From Dimorphilus gyrociliatus (Eukaryota; Animalia; Annelida): 64,000 nucleotides of DNA. Under the pieces are notes generated by a model. That model made no database searches. It had not been told where the DNA came from and saw only the letters and a program-made list of their open reading frames with translations. Position numbers and translations under genes: made by a program. Below, one piece after another: positions 42,401 through 64,000 of this stretch. The DNA lies in assembly GCA_904063045.1 (NCBI GenBank), contig CAJFCJ010000004.1, forward strand, positions 1,171,713 through 1,235,712, given 5' to 3'. Each line of letters opens with the position of its first letter. Positions within the stretch are counted from its first letter, which is position 1.

Positions 42401-45400
42401 CAAAGATAGTGTTTTTCATCAACAATTTCCAACGAAACTAAGAATCGAAAGAGAAAAGTATTCAATAAAGAGAATAATTAAAGATACTTAAAAATAAAAC
42501 AGTAAAATCTCTCTTCCTACTATATGAATAACCATAATTAAATACAAATAGAAACAAAGCTTCCCTTTACAATTGAATCTTAATAATAAACATATCTCTG
42601 TCCTTATTTTGTTAATATTTAAAAATAGTAAGAAAGCCAAGTCGTATCCTTTTTGCCGTAGGTTATATCACTTTGTTAGTGCATTTCATGATCAACTAAC
42701 TTTACTATAACATACTGTGTTTACAGAGTCCGCACGAAGACAACATTTATCATGAGTTTTATTTGCATTCTTGGCATGTTTATTTTAAATTTTCCAGCTA
42801 ATATTATTCTTTTTTTTATAAGCTACTAGACATTGAACTATCCTCTATTCCTGGCCTCATACTGATCCCTTTCGCCAGAAACACAGTATAAGCATATAGA
42901 CGAAAAGAGTTTATATTCAATAATTTTTGTTTTTTAAAAAAAAAATATATTTGTAACTTTGATTAATATCAATAGCTTAATTTAATAATTATAATAGTTT
43001 GTTCATATTTAATTAATTGGAAAGATTATAATAGTCAGGTTTTTATATGATTAATGTACATTTCAATCAATTTACTAAAAGGTAGTAGTAAATTTTATTT
43101 ACAATATTAAAAATTTTTAAAAGGAAAGGATAGATTATTATTATAGAAATTATGATTGCAATATTGAGAAAAAGTTGCCTAAATATATTAAGGAGAAGTT
43201 GCCTTAAGGATGATGATACAAACCCTTTTAATGGTCTCAATTAATATTTCCTCAGTAATATTGTTAAATGTGTATCATTACATCATTTTGTTTAGTTCCA
43301 GTTTTATATTGTATTAGGCTTAGAAGTACTTAAATAAAGAGAAAATTTTTCTACTTTTCCCCCGTCTTTCTCACTTCTCTCTCTCTCGAGTTTTCACTCT
43401 CTTTTTTAATTCTTCCATGTGATTTATAACGCTTGATTACAGATGTAATTACTCTTCGAATTAATGAATACAATCACGCAAAGCCATGTTATTAATATCT
43501 GTAATCCGTTCACGTTGCCTTTTTCTACAGAATGTAAAGATTAACGAAAATGATCAATATGAATAGACTAATAAAATAAATTCTATTAATATAGCAATTT
43601 TCAGTTAAAAATAGTCTATTATTTCTTCTTTATTATTGAATTTTTTATGTTCTATACTGAAACTAAAAGAAAAGCTAAGCAAAGATAGTAAAAGATATAA
43701 GAAAGTGATCTTCGTATCAAGATAAAGCCAACGCCACCTAACGGCCGCCAGTTTTTTCCAGTATAGTTTTGAAGGAAAGAGGATTTTAACCGTTGTAGGC
43801 ATGCAACTTGCTGCTCGCTCGTTATTCTGATCTGCTTGACAGGTTAGTGACTTGGGAAAATTTTCCCTCTTTATAGTTTTATTTTCGTAAAAATATTTAA
43901 AAAATATTTATATTTAAGAGATTTATCTTTTACTATAAAAGTAAAATCATACGAAAAGAGCTGTTGCATATTTTTGCAAAACTTGTATTTCTAAGTGTTT
44001 TTGATTTTCTCTTTCATCTTTATTTTTAGTAGTAAATTATTATTTTCGTCTAATTTTACAGAAATCTCTCAATCTTATATAAATTGATAATAAGTAACGA
44101 ATATTATACTTGTACGCAAAGTAAGAAAGAAAGCTTTGTTATTCATTTCAATTTTATAAGTTAATACAAGAAAAAGGTTATATTGTACATTTGATGTACT
44201 TTTATCTTTTTTTTCCAATTATTTCTATCGTTTAGTTATGTTGCGAAGTTTTGTTTTGGTCTTATTGTCAACATATTCTTTACGGATAAAATGAAACGAA
44301 ACTACGCAGAACAAAAATCAATTTGATCCGTTTTTGTTCATCAACAATGTCACGCTTTTGGTCAATTGTTAGAGGAAAAATTAATGAAAATTGTAAGGAT
44401 AGCTTATAGGCAAAATATGCTCCAGTCATTTCTTTTCACCTATATTTTTTTGACTCTTTTCTCCTTTTCATTCTTTCATATTTCCTATGTATCCACCATT
44501 TTCATTTTGGCCTTATTTCCGTACTCTCCTACATATTAAAATAAAAAAGATAGAGTCCATTGAAAATAAACAAAAAACGAAGCATCACAATATTACATAC
44601 TAACGTATGAAATGTAAGTATTTATATATATATATATATATTTCGCTGTGAGCATTACAGCAGCTTGCTTTTCAATTTGCGATAATTGCATCTCGTCCTT
44701 GATTATGAAACCTTAAAAAAATAGACTTTTTTCAGCCGGAAAATTTCTAAGCATAATAGCTGTTCTACCAGTTAACCTTTAAAGTGAGAGATAATTTTGA
44801 TTAATATTAGAAGATACATATATATATATATATTGTATTTGTAAATACTTTCTACTCTATACTATACTTACGCATGTAAGAAAAGGGAATTTATATTGAA
44901 ATATGATAAATATGCTAATTTTAACAGATCAAAAAGGTAATTACTAATAAATATGTTAACAGACGCCAATTGTTCATCATAATAGTTTTATATAGTAAAA
45001 CGAAAAAGAAAAAATTTACAATGTTTGTTTAAGAGTTTTTATATTTTTTTTATTAGGATACATATATATATTTAAGTATACATAAATACATTGTTACTAC
45101 TGTTAACATTGATTACTTTGTTAACAAAGTAGAATAAATCGGATGTAATATATTGATTTATTATTGACGGAATTGACTTTTAGTATTCAGTCTTGACACA
45201 TAGTCACGCCGCAAAGCGTTGAAGGAAATTAGGATTAATAGGATTATGTTGCTACTAAATGTAAAAGTTACTAAAGTGGAAAAAAATGGATATTACAGGG
45301 CGACCTTTAAGTTTGTCAATCTTTCTCTTATCGGAAAGGAGGCCTTTACAGTTTGGTGTCTTGGAAGTGGGGCGCTATATGTTACTCATGTGAAGAAAGT

Positions 45401-47864
45401 AAAAACCTTCTAGTACATAGTAGTAATAGTAATAGTAAGAAAGCAGAACTACAAACCGGAAAGAACATCTAATTATCACTAGTACATTTGTTTAACCAAC
45501 TTTCCATTGACAAACATAAATCTGAGAAGAAAATTGACCACCTAATAAGGGAGAGATGTGAGAATGTGCTAAATCTCATGGATATTGTTAAATATTAAAA
45601 TAATATAACAATTCTATAGTTTTAATTTAAATCTTACTAGAAATAAATAAAAATGAGTATATGTAAAAGACAAATCATCCTTAAACGGTTTATCTTAGGC
45701 CGTTTTTAAATAGAATTAAGGTACGTATAAATAAATTAGGCTAAAGCTGAGTAATGGGTATGCTAAATAGGACAATGAAACTTTCAGATGTAAGGGATAA
45801 AGCGTAAATGATACAATATAGTTTTGATGTTTTCGTTATTTTTGTAGTATAGGGTCATAAATAAAGTATATATATATATATATTCAGTACTTTTTGCAAA
45901 ATATTTACTTTCATCTTGGTTAAAATAATAAATAAGATTTATAAAAAGTAAGAAATTCAAGGAAGACTGATTTTATATAATTGAATGAAATATTTTCCTT
46001 CTACAAACAGTTTTAAGAGAGCATCTAAGAGCAATATATATCTTCTTAGGTACAATCTATTTATCCCTTCATCCCGTAATTTATGTAAATTAGGTCTCGT
46101 ACAGAAATTCAGTCAATCGATCATTAAGCGACATAGACAATTCAAGGTTGTCGTGTTTGATTAATAGTAACGGCTTTTATGTGATTTTGATTAGCCGAGA
46201 ATGTTTCTTTTTCTATTTGAGCCAGAAGATCGATTACTTAAATTGACGGTAGCAGATATAGTAATACCTATAATAGGTTTGGAAACGCATAATTTCACTA
46301 CAATTAAGTGGGTGGTTCTTTTTTGTGGATTTGTACAAAAGAGGCTTTCCTATGGCATTTTTCTAACTAAACTCTTTCAAAATACTTCTATCTATAACAT
46401 ATCTATATTCTAAGGGAATCTACAATTTTTGCTCATTTATAATACTTCTTACATCAATTGTCTATCTGCTTCTTTCCTGAAATAATATATAAAGTATATA
46501 CACAGTATACTCTTCTGAAAATATTTTCCTTTTCATGAGCTTCTCTTTTATTGAGGCTAAATTAATAACCAATTATAAAAAGACTTCATTGTACTATCTA
46601 AAAGGGAATTTGAATGTAACAAAAGCCTTTAAACAATTGACTATAAATTACATCTAATTAGTTCTAATTGTAGATTGATTTGAAAGGGAGAAAGCTAAAA
46701 AAAGGAATTAAGCAAAATATTTTTCAACATATGAATTTACAAAAAATATAAGAATACTATAGTCAGAAATAAAAGAAAGTAAATGCGAATTTGAGTGGAG
46801 AAAAGACCATCTCAGACCTTTGACCATTTCAACGGTGTGCTCATTGCGTGAAAGAACATGGTAGATTAGGCTATTAAATGGAGAAGATGAGTCATTAAAG
46901 AAAACTACTATGGTATTGCTATTAAACTCACGTATCATTATTATGTAAATAATGTTAATTAAAAGAAGTTAGCTATCCTTTGTGTAGTTAGTGAAAAAGT
47001 GGAGGGAATGGAAGAAAAAAACTAAGTAATAGGATTGTGGAGTCGAAGGATCAAAAAAACCAACATTATTCGAACTGACATTCTTTTCCTCTCTAAAAAC
47101 CTGCTAAGAGAAAGTGCAAAGAGCCAAGTTACTGCTTAACATTGTACTTTAAGATACTCTATATTGACTACGTTGTATTTACTTTCTTTTGGACAAAATT
47201 AAATTATATCGTTCTTTCGCTTACTCTTTCTGCGAATAATTTATTTGCACAGATGTATAAATCTCATAAATGTATTTGTAATAAATTTTCCAGGTGAATA
47301 ACATCTTTCTCTTACTTGCCTCTCTTCGTTTCTTCACTTGTCTATCTCTATCCTCTTCCTTTCCTCTTCTCTACTCCCCTCTTCTTGTCCCTTCATCGTC
47401 TCTATCTCTTCATTTTCTTATTTATTTTAAATTGGTCAAATATAGTAGATATGTAATTCTTTTTTATTTATTTACGAGTTGTAAACAAATTTTGTTTATA
47501 ATCATCATTTTTTTATCACTATAGAGGGATTTAGTATGTTGGATTACTATAAAAGCCTATCTATTGTTATAAAGGAAGATATACAAAGATTTTAGTAATA
47601 GCAAAATATAAAAGAAAATGATCCAAACCCAACTTCAAAAGAGTATTTCTCTCTTTTGCTATTTTAAATGTCACGTATTCCCAAGCTTTTGATTATCAAA
47701 GTCTAGTATTAAGGAATATTTAAAATTTTGTAGCATTTATATGCAAACTGTGCAAACAAGATTAGCCCATCCGACAAAAACATGATCGTGTGAATTGACT
47801 GTTATTTAGATGGAAAGCGTCTATCATTTATCATCCTTTATCCTTTCACAAAATTCAGTATATT

Positions 47865-47866
47865 TA

Positions 47867-47910
<44 letters not shown>
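47865..47910. repeat. (TA)n microsatellite
   Basis: Directly visible. Confidence 0.9.
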
Positions 47911-47912
<2 letters not shown>

Positions 47913-50639
47913 TAATATAACACTCTTTATGAGGTATATCTAGGTAAGCATATTTTGCCCGACATATGTCTCAGAATCAAAGTTCGTTCAACTTTCCATA
48001 TAATAAGTATATGTGAAAATATGTTATAAGGAAGATTTGCGTATGGTATTTCAGCTCAGATAGGTCATTACGTACAAAAAAATAACTTACTAAAATAGTA
48101 TTTCTTTCCAAAAATTCAATTTGTTTGCCCTACTTTTTTCGCCTTGTTTAAGCGTCTAGCTTGCTAATTGAGATTTTTCAGATGACTAGAGGCACTCTCT
48201 GTTGACTCAGGCTACATTAAGAGAGTGCAGTGAAAATTGCGCTACTGTATAGTTTAAAAACGTCCCTTTTTCCGGCTGTATTTATTAGCTATAGCAAAGT
48301 GTCCGGGAAATTTATCGGTTGTTGCTGTAGGGCTTGTCGAAAATTGCGTGTTGATGGTTTTATGACGTTGATTTCTGGTTTCATTGTTGTGTCAAATTTA
48401 CAAGTTTTCTACAGAATTCAATTTTCTTGTTATTTAACTATTTCTTTTGAGTATTGAACAACTTTAAAAAACCAACTCTTAATTAAGATTACGAGGATAT
48501 CGCCAGCAATGAATAATAGTAAATATATTTGATTGTTTCCTATTGATTTCCCGAAAGAAGGACTCAATACAACTAATCGACGAGTTACTTTTATACTTTA
48601 GCTAAAAAAAAACAGATGGAATAAAATATAGCTTGGTGTAAACATAAGGAAAAAAGAACGTTTATAGAAACCTATTTCCTTATCCAATACTTTACAAGAA
48701 GTCAGTCAAATACCCTTTTAAGAAATCTTTCGAAAAAAGTCAAGCACATCAAAAGTCTTAGCAATCTATTATGTAGTCTAAAATTTCATGTTAAATATTT
48801 ATTGTAGTTAGTCTCTTCTCTAGTTATTTTAATATAAATAAATAAAATTAAATACTGATTACCTATCTATCTTAAAATAAGAGATACTTTGAGATTATCA
48901 TAATGTATAAGTATTTGTTTACAGACTAAACGTATTAAAAGATTATCTACATTATTCTATTAGTTCGTTCCTAGTCTCCTTTTAATAATAAATATATCAA
49001 AATAGAGATAGTTCCGAGTACAAGTAGATGCAAAAATTCCAATATGTATTGAGTATATAGAATAGTAAATACATACATATAAAGTAAATGTATATTAGAT
49101 TTGCAGAGTAAATAGCCTAGTATGCATATATATAGTATATATACTGTACATGTAAATATATTACATTCATATATTATTGGAACTACAAGAACATGTAAAT
49201 ACATATGTATAAAAATAGATTCATTACCATATATATATATACATATGAAATAGATTCAGAAGATGTAACAATATCACATATGCATATAATACTTTCAACA
49301 TGTTGTCCTACAGAACATTTCTAATTAATTAACATAGCTTTCCAAAGCGGGTATTTTGGTTTTAGTATATGAAAAATTTCTTAAAATATTTAAAATGCCG
49401 TCAAATAGTAAATTAATTTTTGAAAATATACTGCAAAACTGCAAATACTTTCAAAAATTGAATTTCATTAGAAAAATGAATCTTATAGCTAAATAAAAGT
49501 TGGTTTATTTCGAAAATTATACCTTTTCTTATGTTTTATTATATTCATAAAGAAAATACATTGGTAAGAAAAGTAAAATAAGAATTACAGACGAAAATTA
49601 AAGCAGTTTTTGTCAATAATTTACTTATCGTTTCCTTCTTTTCTTTTATGACTTTGAGAGAAGCCTTCTTGAAATATGCCATAAATTATTAAATAGTTAG
49701 ACATCTCTTAGTCTAATGGAATGTCAAAACAACTTGGGTAGCACCTAGACCCTGTTATTGATGATCAAACAAAAAAGAAAAAGAGAACCCAAGGCATTAT
49801 ATATTATCAATTGTTTCAAACCTTTGATACCTTTGTTGTACTTTTACAACTAATTGTATCAATATTTTACTTTTTAATTGCTTCTTGTCGTTATTTTCTA
49901 TTGCAAGCAATTTGAAAAATATTTTAATGCATAAGCCAAAGAATGAAAATATCCGGCGATATATAAAAAGTCTTTAAACAAACAACTCCATAAATTAGAG
50001 TATTGTAAATACCTCTCCTATCGATTACCTTATTATGTAATTCTGTTGGAGAAATATTTTCTTTCTTAAGTTTTAGCCATTTTATATACTCTTTTCCACC
50101 TGTTTGTCACCACTTACAACGAGATGTAAGAGTTCTATACCATTAAATCGTAAATTTCTTAGTAGAAAATTGATTGATAGTCTATTATCGTGCCAATTCG
50201 CCTTGCACGGAGTATTTACGGATGAGTTTTATAAAGAAAAACAAACGGTTTTATCCTAAAAATAATCTACCAAAATATATTTTTTAGTGTATATTCTTCT
50301 TCAATTGTCAAGTCTTAACATTTTCCTATAAAATATTTCCTTTTGTATTCCCCACTGTACAAAGTAAGAGGAAATCACTTCTTTTACAATTATCATTCTA
50401 AACTTTACTGTCATTCTCTTTATTATTTGCAGTTGCTTCCTTTTCTCGCTTTAAAATCTTTTACTTTTATTACTCTGGATTTTTTTTAAAAAAACAACAA
50501 AATCTTTTTGATCTATTAATAAAATATTAATTAAATCCTGTTTTTAAAGATAGATTTCACAAACAATGCATATGTACATGTATATTTCAAGGAAATATGT
50601 TTAAAGAAAAATATACTTTCATACTGAGAATAGGCAGCC

Positions 50640-50660
50640 GGGAGAGAGCCAGTAAGAGAG

Positions 50661-50696
<36 letters not shown>

Positions 50697-50795
50697 AGAG
50701 CAGGACAGTGAGAAAAAGACAAAGAGAAAGACAGAAAGAGAAAGAGAGAGAGACAGAGAGACAGAGTTGAAAAGCCTGACAGAAAGAGAGATAAA
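50640..50795 (+). repeat. (GA)n / GACA-rich purine microsatellite tract
   Basis: Perfect (AG)n core ~50664-50691 with degenerate flanks. Confidence 0.9.
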
Positions 50796-53582
50796 GAGGA
50801 AAAACAATGAAATATAACATATAAATATTATATATACAGCAAATAACTTCTGTATGTAAGTATATTTTTCTGTAATATATGTTAAGCGAATCGGCTAAGA
50901 AAATGTCACGACATTCACATTTCACAAGGATTGATGGACTGTTACTATCACCGTAAATATCCAATTTCCTGCCTACACTTAATATTCCTATCATTTCCAT
51001 CTCACCTGCCGTTACTAAGTTTTTATATCCTCCCTCTTCTATATCTCTATTTATTTCTATTTATATCTAATTCTGCCTCTTCCACCTTCTGGCCGATAAG
51101 AAGTTAAGACATCTTTCGTTTGTATCAATCTTTTTTTATTGAAAGTTTCAAGTTATTTATCAAAAAGAGCATCTTGTACAAATTTAACGAACGAGAAGAC
51201 TTGTACAAATCAGAGTGTATTTTGCTAACGTTTAGTCTTAAACGTACATACGTTTATATATATTATATATATAGCTGTGTGTATGATCTATGTAGACTGT
51301 GTGCCAAGTTTTACTCACTCTTGAGAACAATATATAAATATATATGTACAATTTGAAAACTTTCTTTATTTTGCTGTAGTCTTTATTTCGTTCTGGCAAG
51401 GCTGAATCAAAGTAGAAGGCAAAATGTCACGGGCAACTGATGACTTTTTGCGGTCGTTAATGGAAGTAAAAACTAAGAGTAGGTACTACTGAGTGGTTTT
51501 TGTCTAGAATTTTATTGCTAGTCTTCTTCAATTGGTTTGGCCTTACTTATTTTCATGAAAAATCACGTTTTCAATTTAAATGGTGATGAGTTTGTTATAG
51601 GCTGTCATCTTCTTTTTTTCTGTTTTTAAGGGATGGTTGTAATCAACTGTAATTTGTTAATATAGTACGAAAGAAGTAAGTAGATGACAATGAAAAAGTG
51701 AGATATTTATAGTAAGTAACCTAAAATTTTGCATTGTAAATTTGCTAAAAAAGGACTAAAATTTCACGCTATTTTCTTCCCACTTAACTATCTTTAGTGG
51801 AAATGTAGCCAAAAAGATTTAACAGTATCATCATATGCTGAGCTAATTTCATACCTCAGTTATCTACTAAACTAGTTTCTGAGAAAAAAATTATAACAAA
51901 TTAGAGAAGGGGAAAGGATTCTTGAAGTATAAATAAAAAAATTATAAGAAAACTGTAGATTGACAAGTTAAAAAGTAAAATTAATGAGAAAGAAGTCACC
52001 CAAACTCGTCAACAGAGAAAAGGAGCAATCATGTAGAAAAAAATTCTATAATGATGAAGAATAATTTTGACGCCTATTTCTGACCTAAAAATAATCAGAA
52101 ATGTCAAGCAAATTATTTATATAATTAGTAAGGAAAATTTTGGAAAATTTAAAGAAAGTATAGAATTTTTGTTATCTTTTAAATAACAACTTGATTAATA
52201 AACATTAAACAACTATATATAGTGTTTTATACTTTTTAAAAGACAGCAGCCATCTAAAATTAGATAAATGTAATTATTTTAATAATAATCAAATGCCTCT
52301 TAAGTAATCACAAAATTAATTATGTCCAGAAATCATATAGCAAAATCATACCACGATTTACCTGTTGAATGTAGCTATTTTCTTTTTAAAAAAATGTATA
52401 TGGCGTAACCATGGAAATGTTATGTTGATAAGAAAAAGGAAGCGAATGTCCAATTCTGAGAAATTTTGGACAATTTAATAGTTTTCTTTTTTTAAAATTG
52501 TTGTATTTCTTACTAATATCATTGGAAAAAACTGGTAAATACTTAAAGTTTTCCCAGAAATAAGGACTCTTTTAAATTTTCTTTATAATGTTCTATTATA
52601 TTTTCTACATATAGAATATACATGTATAGTTGTTTGTATGATTAAGGTTTTGTAATAAAATAGACGCTTTTTATATTTTATATATAATACAACCAGAGTG
52701 TATGATACGAAGATAAAAAATTCACCAAAGAGATAAATTAAATAAAATATTTTGGTCCATTCTTTGTAGAGAAAGAAAATTATCATATTTTTAAATTACT
52801 ATATAGAAATTGCTTTATTTCTTCCGAAATGCAGACTACTTTCATTACTCAATGTTATATAAAAAAAATTATATTTGTGTGATATTCTCTTAAATCAGGT
52901 CAACGTCTTCATTTACATCTTATATCAAGTTTATTTAACAAGAATTGAAGTATTTTTAAAATAAAGAATGTCTTTAACGAGTGAAATATGAAGGTTGAGA
53001 AGACCTTTAGCAAATAATTCAAGGATTAAGTCTTAATGTTGACATCTGTAATCAAAGTTTATTAAGAATTTCTTTTTCTATACAAGATCTTCTGTTTCAG
53101 AGAGATTTCTCTGGTTCTTTTTGCATTAAAACAAATATTTCTATTATTCCAATTGGGAGGTTAAATGGAACCAATCAAGATTCATTAGAGAGGCGTAAAA
53201 TTACTCTCTTAAATAGGTAAATGCCTAAAAAATGAGAAATTCTATTATCATTTTAGCCTGATAATCATTTATTAATAGCTTTCCCTGTAAGTTGCATCAA
53301 AGTTTCTTTCTAAGGGAGATAATCTTGGTTTCAGTACAAAGGATTGAATAATGTCATATATTTAATTGTGTAAAATGGACCATTTTGCTTGTCAAATATT
53401 TTTCATAGAAAATATGTCAAAATTGACGCATATTTTCTTTGTCCTTAATAACTGCTAACATTACTATAATAGCTGATTGCACATTGTGGTTTTCAATACG
53501 AAACTGAAAAGGAAGAATTTCCTCTATAGCTAGACTTGGGGCAAAAAAACTTATCAAATAAGAAAATTTAGATATAGATTGG

Positions 53583-53608
53583 GAGAGAGAGAGAGAGAGA
53601 GAGAGAGA
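53583..53608 (+). repeat. (GA)n microsatellite
   Basis: Directly visible. Confidence 0.9.
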
Positions 53609-54587
53609 AAGGGAGGGGTTCCAATGGGATAGAGACTGATTTAATAGGAGAAAAAAACTTAGGAGTTAAAGCTGCTTAGTAAAGGAAGGAGGGGTAGTGT
53701 AAACAGGATATAAAGATAGTAAAGAGAAGGGGTAGAGGAAGAAGAAGATGAGGAGAGTAGAGAGAAATAATTACAAGTTTACTTGTTTCTTAAATCCATG
53801 CTCACTAACAACTTTTTGAGTGATTAAGCCTTCGCCAACTTTGTCACAAAACGTCTTGAGTCTTCGTTAAGCCTACTTTTCTGACAATGCAAACAGGCGA
53901 ACAAGTGTATATTTTCCAAATTGACCCGATATATGATCCAATAGTCACTCACTCACCCTGGGGCAAAAATATAAATATACTATTATACTGATTGCAGATT
54001 CTATTCGTACGCTTTAGAAATATTTTTGTAGGAAAAGGTTTGAAAAATGTTTTTTAGACTTTGTACCACATTTTTTACTGTTTAAAAAATTCCCAAAATA
54101 TGAAAACTAATTAGTTAAAGTTTAAAGTGAAAAGCTAATTAGATGAAAGAAAAATATTATGTTGCATAATATGAAGAGAGAAGAAGAACTTGTAAAGAAG
54201 CCTTTGTCTAAAAGCGTTTAAAGGAAATATAATAAAAAGTATAATTTACCCTTGTCTCAATATAGTATCTAATTAATTTAATATAGGAAGAATATATTCT
54301 TATAATATTTATTGCTAGCATTAGGTGTAGGTTAAATCTATTTATTATATTATCAAGTCGTTAAATTTAATAGAAACGCGATAATTGACTATATTTTTGT
54401 CACTCAGACTTAATATTAACATAAATTTACAATATATACAATTTTTATAGTGCATTATTCTATTATTTTTCTATATATCATACCATTTTCCAATTTAAGA
54501 AAGATTTCGTACGCCTTGTTACTTTATTATTGTTCTATAATTAATATTTATTATTCATAAATTTATTTCTTTACAGTTTTAAAGAAA

Positions 54588-55148
54588 ATGGGAAACAATC
54601 CTTTTGCTGCTTGTGTTAAACGCGTAGAGGATGCTGTTCCGTCAAAATATAGACACTATTTAAAGGGAAGGAAAGCGGCTAAAACCGAAGAGAATTTTCT
54701 CACAAAACATCTAAGAAATTTTCAACGATCTTGTAATGATGATAAAGAATCGAGGACGTTCTTCTTTCAAAAGAGAACACCACCTAAACAAAGACGACCT
54801 GAAACTAGAACATTTAATATAGGTCCTTTTTCATTTAACACCTTACAAACCCCAGAGCCAAAACAAGAAAGGCGTAAATCATCCTTTAGTTTGCTCACCC
54901 TCCAAAAACCAGAAGAAAAGACTGAACAAAGAAGATTATCAATAGGACCGATTACCTTACAAAAACCAGAGGCCAAAGATGAGGCTAGGAGGTTGTCAAT
55001 TGGACCTGTAACACTTCTTCAAGTTCCTGACCAGAAGAGTCAACAAAGAAGGCTTAGTAGTGGGTCAATTACATCGCAAAGATCTGATAGACGACTTAGT
55101 ATAGGACCTTTTACCATGCCTACTATTGAGTTTTCAGGTTCAAAATAG
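54588..55148 (+). CDS. Orphan 186-aa basic, probably disordered protein with a tandem RRxS(IGP)...LQxP repeat array
   Basis: Single ORF directly after acceptor tttctttacag| (exon starts 54577); repeats conserved at the protein level while codons diverge; AATAAA signals downstream (~55524, 55561). The N-terminus could be extended by a phase-1 upstream exon because the frame is open from the acceptor. Confidence 0.8.
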   Translation: MGNNPFAACVKRVEDAVPSKYRHYLKGRKAAKTEENFLTKHLRNFQRSCNDDKESRTFFFQKRTPPKQRRPETRTFNIGPFSFNTLQTPEPKQERRKSSFSLLTLQKPEEKTEQRRLSIGPITLQKPEAKDEARRLSIGPVTLLQVPDQKSQQRRLSSGSITSQRSDRRLSIGPFTMPTIEFSGSK

Positions 55149-55861
55149 CTCTTTTATAAAAGAAGAAAATGTTATCACTTACCTTTTTCTTCTTCAAATT
55201 GCTATCATTTGTAAAAGTAATTCAAAGAAAAAAGAACAAAGAGAGGAAGAATTTACAAAATTTCTCCTTTTTGATTTCTCAATTATATATTTCTTATTCA
55301 TTTAATATTTTTATATTTCTATCTTCGTTCCTCTCTGTTCAATTTTTATGAAACGATTAAAAAAAGGTTTTTATTTTTTTTATATAAAAGTTGAAAACAA
55401 AGTTTTATAAGTCCCTTTTTTTTTATAAAAAAAAATGTAATAGAAAAAAAAACACTTATTGAATAATTCTATTTTTTATCTATTTTCCTTTAAAAAAAAT
55501 AACTTCTGGGCAAAAAAAGGAACAAATAAACAAATGTAAGAAAACTTTGATTTTATAATTAATAAAATAAACTTGAATAAAAGGAATAAGGATTTAAATA
55601 TTTTCTAAAGATTAGAAATTAAATATATTCACTTTGTTTTTTCCGTTTATCTTTTCTTTGACGTTTTTATACAATATTTAAAGTTAACAGCATTGAAAAA
55701 TAATTAAAATATGATTGTTTCATAATTATAAATGGATTTTCTCCATTTAGACAGTAGATGGCATTACTTGCAGAAAAGTTTATGAAAAAGCATTTTGTAT
55801 AATTAATAAAGCCCAGAGTTAATGTTTAAAATTTAAAAGAAACCAATATGTCTATGGTACA

Positions 55862-55926
55862 TATAATGTATATATGCTAATATATATATATATATATATA
55901 TACATATATACATATACTGTATATAT
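55862..55926. repeat. (TA)n/(TACA) microsatellite
   Basis: Directly visible, interrupted by CA and CTG. Confidence 0.85.
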
Positions 55927-58900
55927 TTATATATTATTCAATAAGATTATGAATATTTGTGTGCATAGTTTGTAAATATAAATAGTTGTTGTTTTGTAGG
56001 CGAGAAAAAAAATATGCCATAATGATTCCTACTTACACGAGTACGTTATTTAATATGTTTTTTTATACATGTTGGTAATAGGAAGAGTGAGAAAATACCA
56101 AGATAGATAGACAGATAAATGGAAAGAGGGAGAGAGAGAGAGAGAGAGAGAGAAAGAGTGTTTGTAATAGAAAGATGCAGACAGAGAGGGTTTCGTCAAT
56201 GGAAGAAAGGAAAACAATATATGTTCTCTATTGATTTATGAAAGTTTGAAAGCAATTCCTATAAAACTGTAATTGTTGTAAATATCTTTTTTGCCATTAT
56301 GAAAAGGTAAAAATTGAACAAGAATTGATTAAGAAATTTATTATATGAATACAATTTTTATAATAATTGATTGACAATTAAAGAATAAACAACTGATTTC
56401 AAGGATCTATAAACACTTGTCTGATTAAGTTATTTTTAAACTCTAGTTCTTTTCTTTTGCTATTCTCTACTGTGTATTTTCTTACGTAATTTGCTTACAT
56501 CTTTTAGAAATACATATTAATTTGCTATACGCATAGAAAGAATGAATTAGAGTAATAAAGATACCCAATTTTTTATATTTCTCTTTACATTATCTATCTA
56601 CTGTAAAAATATATCAAAATATTAATAAAGCAGTTAAAATTATATAAATAGGATTTATGACATCTTTAGTTAGGGAGATTCTTTTTTTGTAATCCTTAAT
56701 AGAATTAATGTATGGACAGGTATAAATTACTCTTTATGCGAAATCATATTTTCAAGTATAGTATAACGATAAACAATATATAAGGTTAAATACTCTGTCT
56801 GGTTTGACACTAAAAATGGACTTGTTGCATACCAGATACTCCTTTTTAAGGCTTAAGAGACTTTGAGTTATTTAATCTCTTATCTCCTTTTTAATATAGA
56901 ATGTATGTTTTCGGGAAAATCAACAAATATTCATTAATTTCAATATATTTTAATTAATTGAACGTTCATAAAGATTCTTTTCAACTATTGTTCATACTTT
57001 ATGAAGAAGAATCAACTTTTCTACTTGCAAAAGCTACATCAGCAAATGCAAAAAATTTACATATGCTATTCTAGAGATTAAAGGGGCGGAGAGAAGGAGG
57101 AATGCTTTTATTTTTTTTTATAGACAAAAGTTATGTCTTTTTAAAGTATTAATATTTTTAATTTTATAGGTGATTTTCAATACAAAGTAAAGGCTCTTAG
57201 CTTTAGAAATTTGTATTTTGTATTTTACCTTATAAGCTTAAAAAATAAATATTTAACGATTTCTGACTTTATATATAGAATGTATAGTTGGAATACGAAT
57301 AGGTGTTTTCAAAAGTAACTTAAAGATTAGACTTTTATATCACGTTTGACACGATTTATTCTAATATTCCATTATTGAATTTTCTTAAAATTATTTACAG
57401 AGTAAAAAATATGTGAAAATATGATGAATCTCTTTTTTTTGTATGTTTATTTATAGATGATATGACAAATATGAAAATTTTTTTCATAGTTTTTTTTATC
57501 ACTTCCTTAAATGAATATTATAATAATTACTCACTTTCTCTCAGATATCAACATAGCGAGATATGTTTAATAATGAAAATGACAATACATTAATAAATAA
57601 TTTTGCTATTCTGCCCTTTTCAACTGGTCAACTTTATCCCAAATGATCTGTCATTACTCAAATAATTCCTCAAATGTCGTTGAATAATAGAAATGTTTAC
57701 TTCGCTTATTAATGGCATCATACTAATAACCTTCGTCTGTCACTTTATTGGTAGTACAATATCTTTTTTAAGGAGATATGCAAATTGAAGATGAGTTTTA
57801 ACTTTTTATCTTCTTTAGAAGTAGAAGAAAAAAGAAATGCGATAAAATGAAATATTTAATTGATGGAAAAGTATTTCCAACTCTTTCTTTGTTTCCTTTG
57901 GTAGATCATTTCATGAGTAACTATGAAACTTTGCTGTAAAATTGCACTAGGAATAATAACTGACATGTAAAAAATATCTAGTACTAATTATTGGACAAGG
58001 AGGACACAGCATCGTATCTCTCTACCGGATAAAAAGTAAATATTACTTTAATTACATTTTGTATATAAAACAATAAGCCCTTTTTATTTTAAATATTTAA
58101 ATGAAAAGTAGTGCAAACTTAGGTCGTTGATTAAACTATTTTTACATGGAAAATGATAATTTATAGAGTTGAGTATATTCAGTCAAGTTTTAAAGAAATT
58201 AAAAACTATGATAAATTAGCTTTACATGCATTACAATTTTTAATAAATTAGGGATATCTTTGCCATTAAAAAGGATGACTAAGGGCTAATGATATATCAA
58301 CTAGTAAACTAGTATTGTCTTACATTTTTGAAAGTCAGTTATTCTATGGTTTAATAGTCTTATTTAAAGTAACATTACCATAATGGTAAAAGATTATCAA
58401 AATTTCATGAAATTCTTATCATGTTCAAAGATAGAAATGACTACAATTGCAAATGAATCCAATGATTTTAGATTAATTTATGTCCCAAATTTTAAAAAGC
58501 CAAGATATAAGAGATAATCAATTTTCACTTTTGTCACTCTTAAATAGGAAGGCATTGAAAATACTATAGAAAAAATGTTCATTATATTAAAGGACTATAG
58601 CGGAACTGGACGTCAAAGACATATGATATCCTGTAAAGAAATATATTTTCATACACTTTCATTCAAATATCTAAAATTGTGTCATTAATAACACAAATTA
58701 CTTTAGCATGAGAAATTAAATTGATAAAATTAATGAGAAATACGTGGGAAGAAAAGATATTATAGGAAAAAATTTTCTATTCCTACTCTTATTACAGATC
58801 AGGGACGATTTTAAAAGAAAAGCAAAGAGTGTTAATATTCATTCTCTATATTCTAGAAAAGACTTAAATTTCTTCCATAGTTCGGATGATACACATATGC

Positions 58901-61900
58901 GTGAACAACATATATATTTAGTTATCCTATTGGATGATATATCAGAATAGTAAAATTTATAATTTAGTTTTGTATACCAGTCTACTGAATCTGATGATAA
59001 TAGTTAATTTACTTAATTTCATCCTCCTTTCTTCCATTTAGTTGATATTTCAATATCATTTGTATAAACAAGCTATGCAAAAGAAATATTTACTTTTCTC
59101 TGTTCTCTACACACCAACGTGTCTTGTCTAGTGTTCTTTCGAAAAAAAGCTCTCACTCTACTAAACGTCTAACAACTAATGTTCAACTAAAGAAAGTTAA
59201 TCAGATTTCTTTCTTTATTAATTATTTAATAAATTTTATTTGTACCTTTTGCATTTTAATAATAAACATATATCAAATTAGGTCAATTTAAAAATATTAA
59301 ATTAATTAAAGTCAACATTATTTCATGATTTTGAATTTTGAGAATATTTACTGCACATAAATGGTGTCAAAACAAATAAAATAGACTTTATTATAGAGCT
59401 TACTATATATTATATACAGTTTTAATTATCTATGACAACTTTCATTATTCGTATACTGCATTACTAGTTTCCTCAAGGTCAATAACCTGAGACTTTTTCA
59501 ATAATCTTATGTATCAATGAATAATACAAAAATATTAATTAAAAATACTATATTTACCAATGAATTAGTTCACTGAATTAAATATTTCAAAGAAAGAGTT
59601 ATAATGGTCCTTCACATTAGTAAAAGATATAATGTACAAAGTAATATACATGTATACTGTATATACATGTATATCAATATATACAGCATGTTTTGTATAT
59701 CATTTTTTTACATAAATAAATTTATCTATATATACAGTATACATCTCTTATATACAATTTCATTATAACTTAACGTAATATAGTTGCATTTTGTACAAAT
59801 AGCAATCGAGAAGAAATACATTTATATCATATATACCGTAGGTGATCCTTATACGCTGTGTTTGTATTGAAAATGTGTGTACAAGCAGTAAAAAAACCAA
59901 TTAGTGTAATAATCTTAAAAAATTACTGGATAATAAAATATCATTTCCTTAATAATGTTACTTCTATTCTAGTTGTTTATGATAAAAATCATATTTTTTT
60001 TTACATTCTAATTACTTAACATACTCTTGATTTGTATCTATGTGCATACAAATTAAAGAAAGGAGCTCATTCTTCTAAAAATAACAAACTTCTTCGAATA
60101 TATAAGCTTTTTTTGATTAAACAGTACTTATTTTTGATTTTATTACCACATTATTCTAACTAATGATCCTTATTTTATCCAAAAATTATGCTCTTTATAG
60201 GTATGACTTATAACTAGGCCTACTGGTGCCTTATTTCTGCAGATTTCTATATATCTAATTGCTTTCGAATAATGTACTCGTCTTTAACCATTGAATGAGA
60301 GGAAACTGTAATGTTTTATTGCTAATGGTACATGTCTAGATGAGATAAATAAAGAAAAGAATGATATAGACCATAAAGATAGCAGGTTAGCGATTCCCTT
60401 GGTAGCCATTAAGATCATTTTAAGCCTTATAAAGCATTTCAATAAGATAGTTTTTAAGTAGTAAGCTATTTTAATAGAATTCTTAAAATACAACAATCAA
60501 AAGACTATTTAAATTTCATATACATATTATAGAATTAATATATAATTATTAAATGATATCAACAATGTATAGAAAATTTGTCTGCAGATCTAATTTTGCC
60601 TATGAAATGAAGAATAAATCTATTCTTCCGCCTTGACAACTTTCATACAACATAAGCATTATTTACAACAGGAGATAATGTTAAAAAATTATTCAATCAA
60701 GCATGAAAAGATATATATGTACGACATATGGTATAAAGTCAACTTTAAAGTATAGTCGTTTTAAAGATACGCTTTTAGAGGTGTAATACTTTCATTAACT
60801 TTTATTTTTGATAAATATTCATCATGAAAAAAGAAATTCATTTTAATTTTAATTATTGACATTTAAAATTAGAACGCGAAGCATATCGGCCTATTTTGCA
60901 TGACTCCCACATCGTTATTAAATATGGAAATTGCCTAAATATTGATAACTTCAAAGAATAAATTCGTTTGAAGATTCTTAAGGAACAGTTAACGCAGTCA
61001 TTCGAGCAGACAATCTATAAACTTTTATTGAAATACCGTATACAAAAAAATTATTCTTTTATATCATTTAGGTGAAATAAGACCTTCACTACAAGAGAAT
61101 ACATAAAGACAACTTTCTAATTAGTTACAGAAAACTGCAATTTACTGTATATCTAGAAAGTAGAATGATCTGTTTATAGACACTATTTATATTCTTTTTT
61201 CTCTGTCGAGTAATTTTGTTCGATTATTTTTTCTATGATTCTCTATTATTTCCACACAACGATGGAATATTAACTGCACTTTTTTTTGCGTTGTGCACTT
61301 TATCCTTCTTTCATTTCCCGTCATTACTATCATCTACTATCCATCCTTCATTTATCAAACAAGTTTTGTTCTGTTAGGAAACCTATGTACACATTTTTAA
61401 AGTCCAAGAATCTATTGATTTTCTGTTTAAAAGAGAATAGTTTAGAAGGAAAAAGGCTTTTTTGGATTATTTCGTGCTATTAATTTTGTTAAAAGTTATC
61501 TAGAGAAATAGAATAATATGATTAGAAACCCTTCCTTGATTTCTTATCAATTACTCATTGAAAAAAACTTCTTTTGAAGAATAATTGTTAGAGATGCACT
61601 TGTAATTACAGAGAAAAGAAATCAATTATCAATTTCTCGTCGTTTCTTTGTTAAGAGCATGATAAGTTGACAGATTACTATATTATTTTTTACTTCTTTT
61701 TTGGTTAAAAGCGTATGTCGTTGACTTCATATTAAATTAACATAGTGTTGCGAAACCTTACTCTTATGTGTTCTCTAATCTATCAATCAACATTTCACTT
61801 TTAACGGTTTCTTTTAAGAGTTCTTATTACCTAATTTATAAATAAGTGTGCTATCTCTTCCATTCGAAGCTCTATTATTGAATTCCGTGGTAAGAACATA

Positions 61901-63034
61901 AAAGTAGGAATTTTATACATATTTCGTTTATAATGATATTAAAAAATTCCATTGTATTGCTGAAATATAAAATAGAAAGGACTGGAAAATTTATTTTCAG
62001 TTATATATTAACTTTTAATTGATTTTTATTAAGGTTACAAAATTTCGCATAATTTTTCAATATCATTTCTTTTTTTATCATTTTTATGTAAATGACTACT
62101 ATTTTGTTTTTTTTTTTTCCATTTATTATTTTTTATACCAAACACCATCTCAAAACTTCATCATGATAGGCGTACGTGTAGGAATTTTGACATTATTTGT
62201 CTACGTTTACATATAGGTTTTGTATACCTCATGATTGACTAATAATTCAAGTAATTAGGCTATTTTCTTATTAAAATTTATTCAATTTTTTAATAGAAAT
62301 GCCCTTAGAATGTTATCTTACCTATTCCATGGCTTGAATTGATCGTCTTCTTTGTCGCTATTCTTTAAAAAACGATTTATGCTTTAATTATTATATTAAT
62401 TACTAATTCAAATAATACATATTATTAAAAATATGCATCTAGCCTGGTAAACAAAATAAGTATATACTTTTATAAGGATGACGGTAGTCCTTTTTGCAAA
62501 AGATAATGAAACATACATATATACATTGGCCATTATAAATAAATAGATGTTGTTCGAATTAGTATACAATATAAGCAGAGCATGTTGGGTAATATAAGAT
62601 TAAAGAATTATCAATGGCTAAGAAATCTATTAACATTCACATAACGTTTTAGGAATTATAACGTAAACGTATGAGCATACATAACTCTTTGGTACCGATA
62701 TTAATATGGTGATTTTAGAATACTTAATGGCTTCAATCGCTTCTGTTAAAGAAACAGTCGATATATTGTGACTTCGATAGAAAATTTTCATAGTCTAAGG
62801 ATAATTAAAAAGCTGAATGTTTACTGAAACTTTCAAGACAATTCAGAAAATGTATGTATACATTTATAGTGATTCTATCGTTGTTAGACAGATCTAAATA
62901 TAAATCTAAGATGTAAAAAAAATAAAAATACAAAAAGAGGTACAATTTAGAAATTCTAGAAAGTGACATTTAAAAAACAGCCTTGTCTTGAATTCAACAG
63001 TTTAATAAACAACTCCCACCGATGTGCTAGAATA

Positions 63035-63043
63035 TATATAAAC

Positions 63044-63080
<37 letters not shown>

Positions 63081-63087
63081 CAGTATA
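63035..63087. repeat. (TA)n microsatellite
   Basis: Directly visible, ends in TA-CAG-TA. Confidence 0.88.
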
Positions 63088-63837
63088 GTGCTATTCGTAA
63101 AAATCGTTAAGAAATCCTAATTATTCTGCATAAATTTGCTCCACGATTTCATCATAAATACAACGGGAACTCTACTGGTATAGTTTGGCTGTTTTCTTTG
63201 GATTTATTTTCATTTAATTCATTGTTACATGAACAACTAAAAGGTTTTTGAATGTTTATTTTACTGTATTATTTCAGTCTTGTATTGAAATGAAGTGTAT
63301 TATTTATTTAATGAGAGATTTTCCGTTTTATCTCCAAGTATCTAAAAGACTATGTTTTTAATATATATTGATAAAAAGACAGAGGATGCGAAAATTACAT
63401 ATATTTCATTTTTTTTCTATTAGATTACCCTTCACGTCAAAGGTAAATTTCACTTTTTGTACTTAAAAGTATAGTATTTAAGTGTATATTCTTTTACTTA
63501 TATAACAACGTGTGTCGGGACTTTTTTCATATGTGATGTAATTATCGAACAAGCAATATGTAGGTATTATTAGTATTACTTGACTTGTTATATATTTGAC
63601 GTGCTATATATAATAAAAAAATATGTATATATTTAGTTTATACTGTCAGTGATACCGTAAAGAAATAGTTAGAAAGAACTAAATATATATGTGTGCTCTA
63701 TAGATATAAAGAATTTGACGAGTACGTAACTGTATATACTCTTTTATTGTTGCTGGATAATGCTTATAAAAATATATTTTGTCATTTCGAAAACAGAGTC
63801 AATTTACAAAAGATAACTTACACGATATAATAAAAAG

Positions 63838-64000
63838 ATGGGGGATTCTTGGTTAGCTAATTCTACGAATTCTTCCAACTCTAATAATGATACTCAACAT
63901 ATGTCGTTTGCTGTAAAATGCACTGCAGATATTATTGGAAGTTTAGCAATTTTTGCTAATTTATCTTTTTTATTGGCTTTAAATTATTTAAAAGACAAAA
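63838..64000 (+). CDS. Probable class A (rhodopsin-like) GPCR, N-terminus and TM1 only (runs off window)
   Basis: Open to the window end: MGDSWLANSTNSSNSNNDTQHMSFAVKCTADIIGSLAIFANLSFLLALNYLKDK; short Asn/Ser-rich N-terminus with N-glycosylation sequons (NST, NSS, NDT), a hydrophobic helix with G-x4-(G/A)N TM1 signature, then basic residues. Confidence 0.65.
   Translation, partial: MGDSWLANSTNSSNSNNDTQHMSFAVKCTADIIGSLAIFANLSFLLALNYLKDK

Follow-up and report, generated by a model that had tools for sequence, protein, structure and literature searches.

Locus and Gene Model

An open reading frame of 186 codons, running from an ATG to a TAG stop on the forward strand, lies at positions 54588-55148 of a 64,000-nucleotide stretch (hereafter the window) of contig CAJFCJ010000004.1 from Dimorphilus gyrociliatus. 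The assembly, GCA_904063045.1, is the published genome of this annelid (PMC10735302; PMC7854359). NCBI annotates the frame as one CDS, and the exact protein is recorded at NCBI/UniRef. Coordinates below are positions in the window, and the features that define the gene model are as follows.

53765-54027, no strand assigned: conserved non-coding block of ~260 nt, ~560 nt 5′ of the ATG; ~87% identical between species including indels, vs ~46% just 5′ of the ATG
54570-54576, forward strand: pyrimidine tract and CAG, 11 nt 5′ of the ATG, likely the 3′ splice site of a 5′-UTR intron; its ACAG is kept in both species amid 46% identity
54588-55148, forward strand: full CDS for 186 aa, closed by a TAG stop; a single CDS at NCBI, dN/dS 0.019, with conservation from the ATG and a drop past the stop
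55149-55251, forward strand: first part of the 3′ UTR, patchily conserved; the alignment with ortholog contig L001 reaches 55251

The surroundings of this gene are unusually gene-poor for the compact D. gyrociliatus genome, which holds ~209 genes per Mb with a median intron of 66 bp (PMC7854359); NCBI calls no neighbor within 10 kb of the frame on either side. Across 44588-64000 (L004:1-20561) the GC content is 25-30%, and the orphan gene is the sole NCBI-called gene. Dinucleotide microsatellites of the (GA)n/(CT)n type flank it at 50531-50807 and 56050-56241, where the translated frames read as SLSLSL or RERERE runs. A tblastn search of the 64-kb window, with 55866-55937 masked, found no paralog of the protein. 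One sequencing run contains 28% of the sampled words, a fraction that fits a ~1.1-kb mRNA or low-coverage DNA alike.

The Ortholog and Selection on the Protein

A word-indexed search of 5.8 billion clusters returned a sole relative, a protein of 185 aa (P0001) that is 97% identical to the D. gyrociliatus protein and differs from it by four substitutions and one deletion in all. Two Logan contigs carry its coding sequence, L001 and L002 (SRR23372229 and SRR23372232); they are 99.9% identical to each other and represent one locus. Because both contigs are colinear with the window and carry no sign of splicing, we take them to be genomic DNA of a related worm species. Comparison of the two coding sequences by the Nei-Gojobori method gave 53.5 synonymous vs 5.5 non-synonymous differences (dS 0.67, dN 0.013, dN/dS 0.019; Fisher p = 4e-34), which indicates that the 186-aa protein is under very strong purifying selection. 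The same contrast is seen by codon position, with between-species identity of 97.6% at positions 1 and 2 and 71.5% at position 3. Identity is 46.5% over the 150 nt 5′ of the ATG and 65%, with conserved islands, over the 150 nt 3′ of the stop; conservation therefore sets in at the ATG and falls off past the stop. A partial ORF of 44 aa called on the minus strand of the ortholog contig (L001:2174-2308), 60 nt past the ortholog stop, is cut at the contig end and overlaps a conserved 3′-UTR patch; it is probably spurious.

These comparisons bear on whether the frame codes for a protein in its own right. Its isolation in AT-rich DNA, without an annotated neighbor, and an acceptor-like site directly ahead of its ATG would suit a frame that arose by chance, or an exon belonging to a larger gene. 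The excess of synonymous change at this significance is, however, hard to reconcile with chance, and the conserved interval has the ATG and the stop as its exact limits. Between the conserved ACAG and the ATG, moreover, an in-frame TAA and a frame-breaking indel of 2 nt interrupt the ortholog, so that translation truly begins at this ATG and no upstream coding exon is joined at 54570-54576. We consider the idea of a chance or partial frame scarcely credible: 54588-55148 is a real gene whose coding part is a single exon, under selection at the level of the protein.

Flanking Non-coding DNA

Trans-splicing at the acceptor-like site ahead of the ATG was rejected in favor of a cis-spliced intron in the 5′ UTR. 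The site is read as cis because, according to the genome paper, D. gyrociliatus has no spliced leaders, operons or trans-splicing (PMC7854359). A candidate for the other side of such an intron lies further upstream. The block at 53765-54027 is more conserved than the synonymous sites of the gene, while the DNA around it can barely be aligned, and its conservation stops at 54028, where both species have a GT. As a coding exon the block was rejected, with stops in all six frames. As a structured RNA it was likewise rejected: it has no Rfam match, and neither strand shows excess folding energy (z-scores of 0.39 and 0.75). It may be a promoter, an untranslated first exon, or both. An untranslated first exon ending at 54027, together with an acceptor ending at 54576, would define a 549-nt intron (54028-54576).

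Repeat Architecture and Predicted Disorder

The protein begins with a head of 68 aa and continues as six tandem units, each 14-26 aa long, with the unit consensus RRLSIGPxTLQKPExKxEx. Its parts, and the two short motifs discussed later, are laid out as follows.

54588-54791, forward strand: N-terminal head, non-repetitive, residues 1-68; low-confidence AlphaFold2 helices at residues 5-16, 19-24 and 35-50
54792-54869, forward strand: unit 0, a decayed repeat (RTFNIGP...LQTP), residues 69-94; Asn replaces the phospho-acceptor Ser, with the IGP and LQxP elements present
54870-55145, forward strand: units 1-5, residues 95-114, 115-133, 134-153, 154-167 and 168-186, each opening with RRxS
55017-55028, forward strand: LQVP, residues 144-147, a match to the LxVP pattern L-x-[VLI]-P, with LxVP present in 3% of shuffles; the last of the four LQxP elements
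55119-55136, forward strand: PTIEFS, residues 178-183, within the tail of unit 5, which diverges from the other units; fits a loose PxIxIT pattern and departs from the strict one

An earlier note on this DNA had described five RRxS motifs, with serines at positions 98, 118, 137, 157 and 171 and a spacing of 20/19/20/14 residues. The translation bears this out in every particular (the motifs start at residues 95, 115, 134, 154 and 168), as it does the placing of LQVP and PTIEFS, and to this description the decayed sixth unit and the fourfold LQxP element are additions. The RRxS array is far beyond chance, as none of 200,000 composition-preserving shuffles of the protein contained at least five such motifs. 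Units 1-5 open with RRKSS, RRLSI, RRLSI, RRLSS and RRLSI, so the residue following the serine is Ile in three of the five sites and Ser in the other two; from unit to unit, RRxS is the most invariant feature. The LQxP elements read LQTP (residue 86), LQKP (105), LQKP (124) and LQVP (144).

Three units share the heptapeptide RRLSIGP, encoded from 54930, 54987 and 55089. Any two of these copies differ in four to five of seven codons with no change of amino acid, and one of the changes is the Ser switch of TCA vs AGT. The codon strings that the earlier note gave for them, this switch included, are as it quoted them. It had argued from these strings that the peptide rather than the DNA is conserved and had called for dN/dS to be estimated across both orthologs and repeats. 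The claim holds on both scales, since the copies within the gene differ synonymously only and the two species differ as set out above. Between D. gyrociliatus and its relative, the spacers of the repeats are conserved as strongly as the RRxS sites themselves.

The protein has a predicted mass of 21.5 kDa, a pI of 10.6 and a GRAVY of -1.06. Its Atlas model has a pLDDT of 0.47 and a pTM of 0.13, and AlphaFold2, run with the two-sequence alignment, gave a mean pLDDT of 49.8, with helices, at low confidence, only within residues 5-50 and no secondary structure of any kind in residues 87-186. It is thus very basic and predicted to be intrinsically disordered. Neither a hydrophobic segment nor a signal-peptide-like N-terminus is present, the first 25 Kyte-Doolittle windows peaking at 0.8.

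Annelid neuropeptide precursors are often repetitive, and the five RR pairs at regular intervals, flanking similar peptides, could be seen as dibasic processing sites that free peptides of the LSIGP type. Such a precursor would need a signal peptide, and the protein has none; the hydrophobic N-terminal core is absent, and the start codon is fixed by the in-frame stop upstream in the ortholog. No RR pair is preceded by a Gly that could serve as amidation donor (the preceding residues are E, Q, A, Q and D), and the spacers show as much conservation as the presumed peptides do. A peptide precursor is very improbable on these grounds.

Search for Relatives

Among ~15 billion proteins, the 185-aa ortholog of the related worm is the sole relative. 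Pfam and PDB searches returned no family and no match, respectively, at E-values up to 10, and an Atlas feature search with the whole protein and with residues 1-70 gave no usable match. A scan of JGI metagenomes with the two-sequence alignment found nothing, nor did a DNA pattern scan of metagenomes with a back-translated double RRLSIGP. A literature search for the RRLSIG motif yielded unrelated acronym matches only. The orphan status claimed before these searches were made is therefore upheld, with the one ortholog as its exception.

An exhaustive phmmer search of 1.84 billion representatives returned, besides the ortholog, only two proteins with RRxS-type repeats, and both were rejected as homologs, as the matches run only through their own repeats. 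The first (P0002) has 1527 aa and carries ~30 tandem units of ~20 aa containing TLRRPSY; it is matched through that motif alone and may be a translated DNA repeat and not a real protein. The second (P0003), from a 29.9-kb contig of ENA assembly ERZ26168041, is an unnamed protein of 474 aa with ~15 tandem 14-aa units of the form GRRLSVGHIEGxNN, and it was the second-best non-self match (E = 7.5e-5). It resembles the worm protein in that RRLS-[VI]-G forms the core of a tandem array, and differs from it in its period (14 aa vs 19-20 aa), its spacers and its flanks. Because its score comes from a short repeated motif alone, this likeness is probably convergent, and the same probably applies to the first protein.

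A Candidate Array of Kinase Sites

R-R-x-S/T followed by a hydrophobic residue is the PKA consensus and a preferred site of this kinase. The array offers five RRxS motifs in a region predicted to be disordered, three of them with Ile in the following position. The best-supported reading, put forward tentatively and at somewhat less than an even chance, is that a PKA-type basophilic Ser/Thr kinase has the protein as a multisite substrate and that phosphorylation switches its repeats. A basophilic kinase would phosphorylate up to five evenly spaced serines in a graded manner, the added phosphates would neutralize the basic repeats step by step, and the loss of charge would act as a switch on their binding, whatever its target. 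Two of the five sites, with Ser in place of a hydrophobic residue after the phospho-acceptor, speak against the kinase reading. PKG and Aurora-like kinases have the same RRxS preference as PKA, and a consensus common to several kinase families does not point to PKA in particular. The earlier note had proposed the motifs as PKA sites; the fit to the consensus stands, with RRxS followed by Ile, though other basophilic kinases fit equally well. The 14-3-3 mode-1 pattern R-[ST]-x-S-x-P and the PP1 RVxF pattern [RK]-x(0,1)-[VI]-x-[FW] are absent from the protein.

The evenness of the constraint raises a different emphasis. Because the spacers are conserved as strongly as the sites, the whole unit may be a binding module in which the serines are secondary. 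The units would then serve chiefly as repeated binding elements in a structural or adaptor protein, basic and disordered, that binds microtubules, actin, membrane or nucleic acid in the style of tau/MAP or MARCKS, with RRxS as part of the binding surface and phosphorylation secondary or absent. The strongly basic and disordered character of the protein, and the regular period and composition of its units, agree with such a role. It is nonetheless RRxS itself that varies least from unit to unit, and the units show no similarity to known repeat families. This arrangement is the main rival, and we regard it as rather unlikely as the chief explanation; it largely overlaps the kinase-substrate reading and does not exclude it.

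Proposed Calcineurin Docking and a Proposed Lipid Anchor

The earlier note had gone further and proposed a switch in which PKA writes the RRxS sites and calcineurin erases them, docked through LQVP (as LxVP) and PTIEFS (as PxIxIT), perhaps at the membrane through lipidation of Gly2/Cys9. The two patterns, in their loose forms, do lie in the disordered region, and they occur together in just 0.7% of shuffles. LQVP is the fourth copy of the LQxP repeat element, with Val as a one-residue variation. The strict, ELM-type PxIxIT pattern is.P[^P]I[^P][IV][^P]; it has no match in the protein, and PTIEFS carries Phe at its fifth position. The loose form, P[^PG][ILVF][^PG][ILVF][^PG] (10.1101/632547), is met in 25% of shuffles in a version whose last position was restricted to TSHEDQNKR. 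In the human proteome, 21,791 PxIxIT-like and 13,014 LxVP-like consensus matches are described as almost exclusively non-binders (10.1101/632547). Conservation of LQVP and PTIEFS is uninformative, because the only ortholog, at 97% identity, is too close for a test of motif retention. The claim of docking had depended on loose regular expressions and is not sustained by these comparisons, so that calcineurin docking is possible without being positively favored by them.

The proposed lipid anchor fares no better. For N-myristoylation, the PROSITE PS00008-type rule requires that the initiator Met be followed by G-{EDRKHPFYW}-x(2)-[STAGCN]-{P}. The N-terminus reads MGNNPFA, in which the fifth residue counted from Gly is Phe, where the rule calls for a small residue, so that myristoylation of Gly2 is not predicted. 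A precedent for the model as a whole exists in calcimembrin/C16orf74, a small, disordered, lipidated microprotein that binds calcineurin (PMC12612047). On balance, we consider the PKA/calcineurin switch improbable for the worm protein. An extended form of it is slightly less probable again: a dinophilid-specific, wholly disordered, recently arisen and indispensable microprotein would act as a counting device. Signaling by cAMP would write its five evenly spaced PKA-type sites, calcineurin recruited to its LQVP and PTIEFS motifs would erase them, and the protein would thereby integrate cAMP and Ca2+ signals in this lineage alone, with a conserved regulatory block to itself in a gene-poor part of a compact genome.

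Significance and Comparison with Known Systems

The protein appears to be new, disordered and confined to its lineage, and its general type is a familiar one, the multisite array of basophilic kinase sites. If the kinase reading is true, it would offer a clean natural multisite phospho-switch that consists almost entirely of repeated kinase sites and is without relatives beyond a single small group of annelids. Fast evolution is the usual expectation for disordered, taxon-restricted proteins, which makes a dN/dS of 0.02 at a dS of 0.67 unusual; a young-looking gene can be held under very tight constraint.

Three known systems invite comparison. Proteins with a myristoyl/electrostatic switch of the MARCKS type likewise carry Gly2 at the N-terminus, are basic and disordered over their length, and have serines in basic clusters whose phosphorylation would cancel charge. 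They share no homology with the worm protein, in which Phe breaks the myristoylation rule and the context of the sites is PKA-type and not PKC-type. For the PKA/calcineurin model of the earlier note, the nearest functional precedent is calcimembrin, which is not homologous. It is a small, intrinsically disordered protein for which a combination of lipid anchor, phosphorylation, PxIxIT and LxVP motifs is proposed (PMC12612047). Calcimembrin has a composite, overlapping LxVP-PxIxIT motif, whereas the worm protein has two loose matches ~30 residues apart and is not predicted to be lipidated. The R domain of CFTR and the regulatory domain of NFAT are also disordered segments with several R-R-x-S sites, some of them followed by a hydrophobic residue, and graded multisite phosphorylation is presumed to be common to them and to the worm protein, with which they share no sequence homology. 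Each of these domains is part of a larger protein, whereas here the putative sites recur with the regular period of a tandem array, and this array accounts for most of an independent protein of 186 aa.
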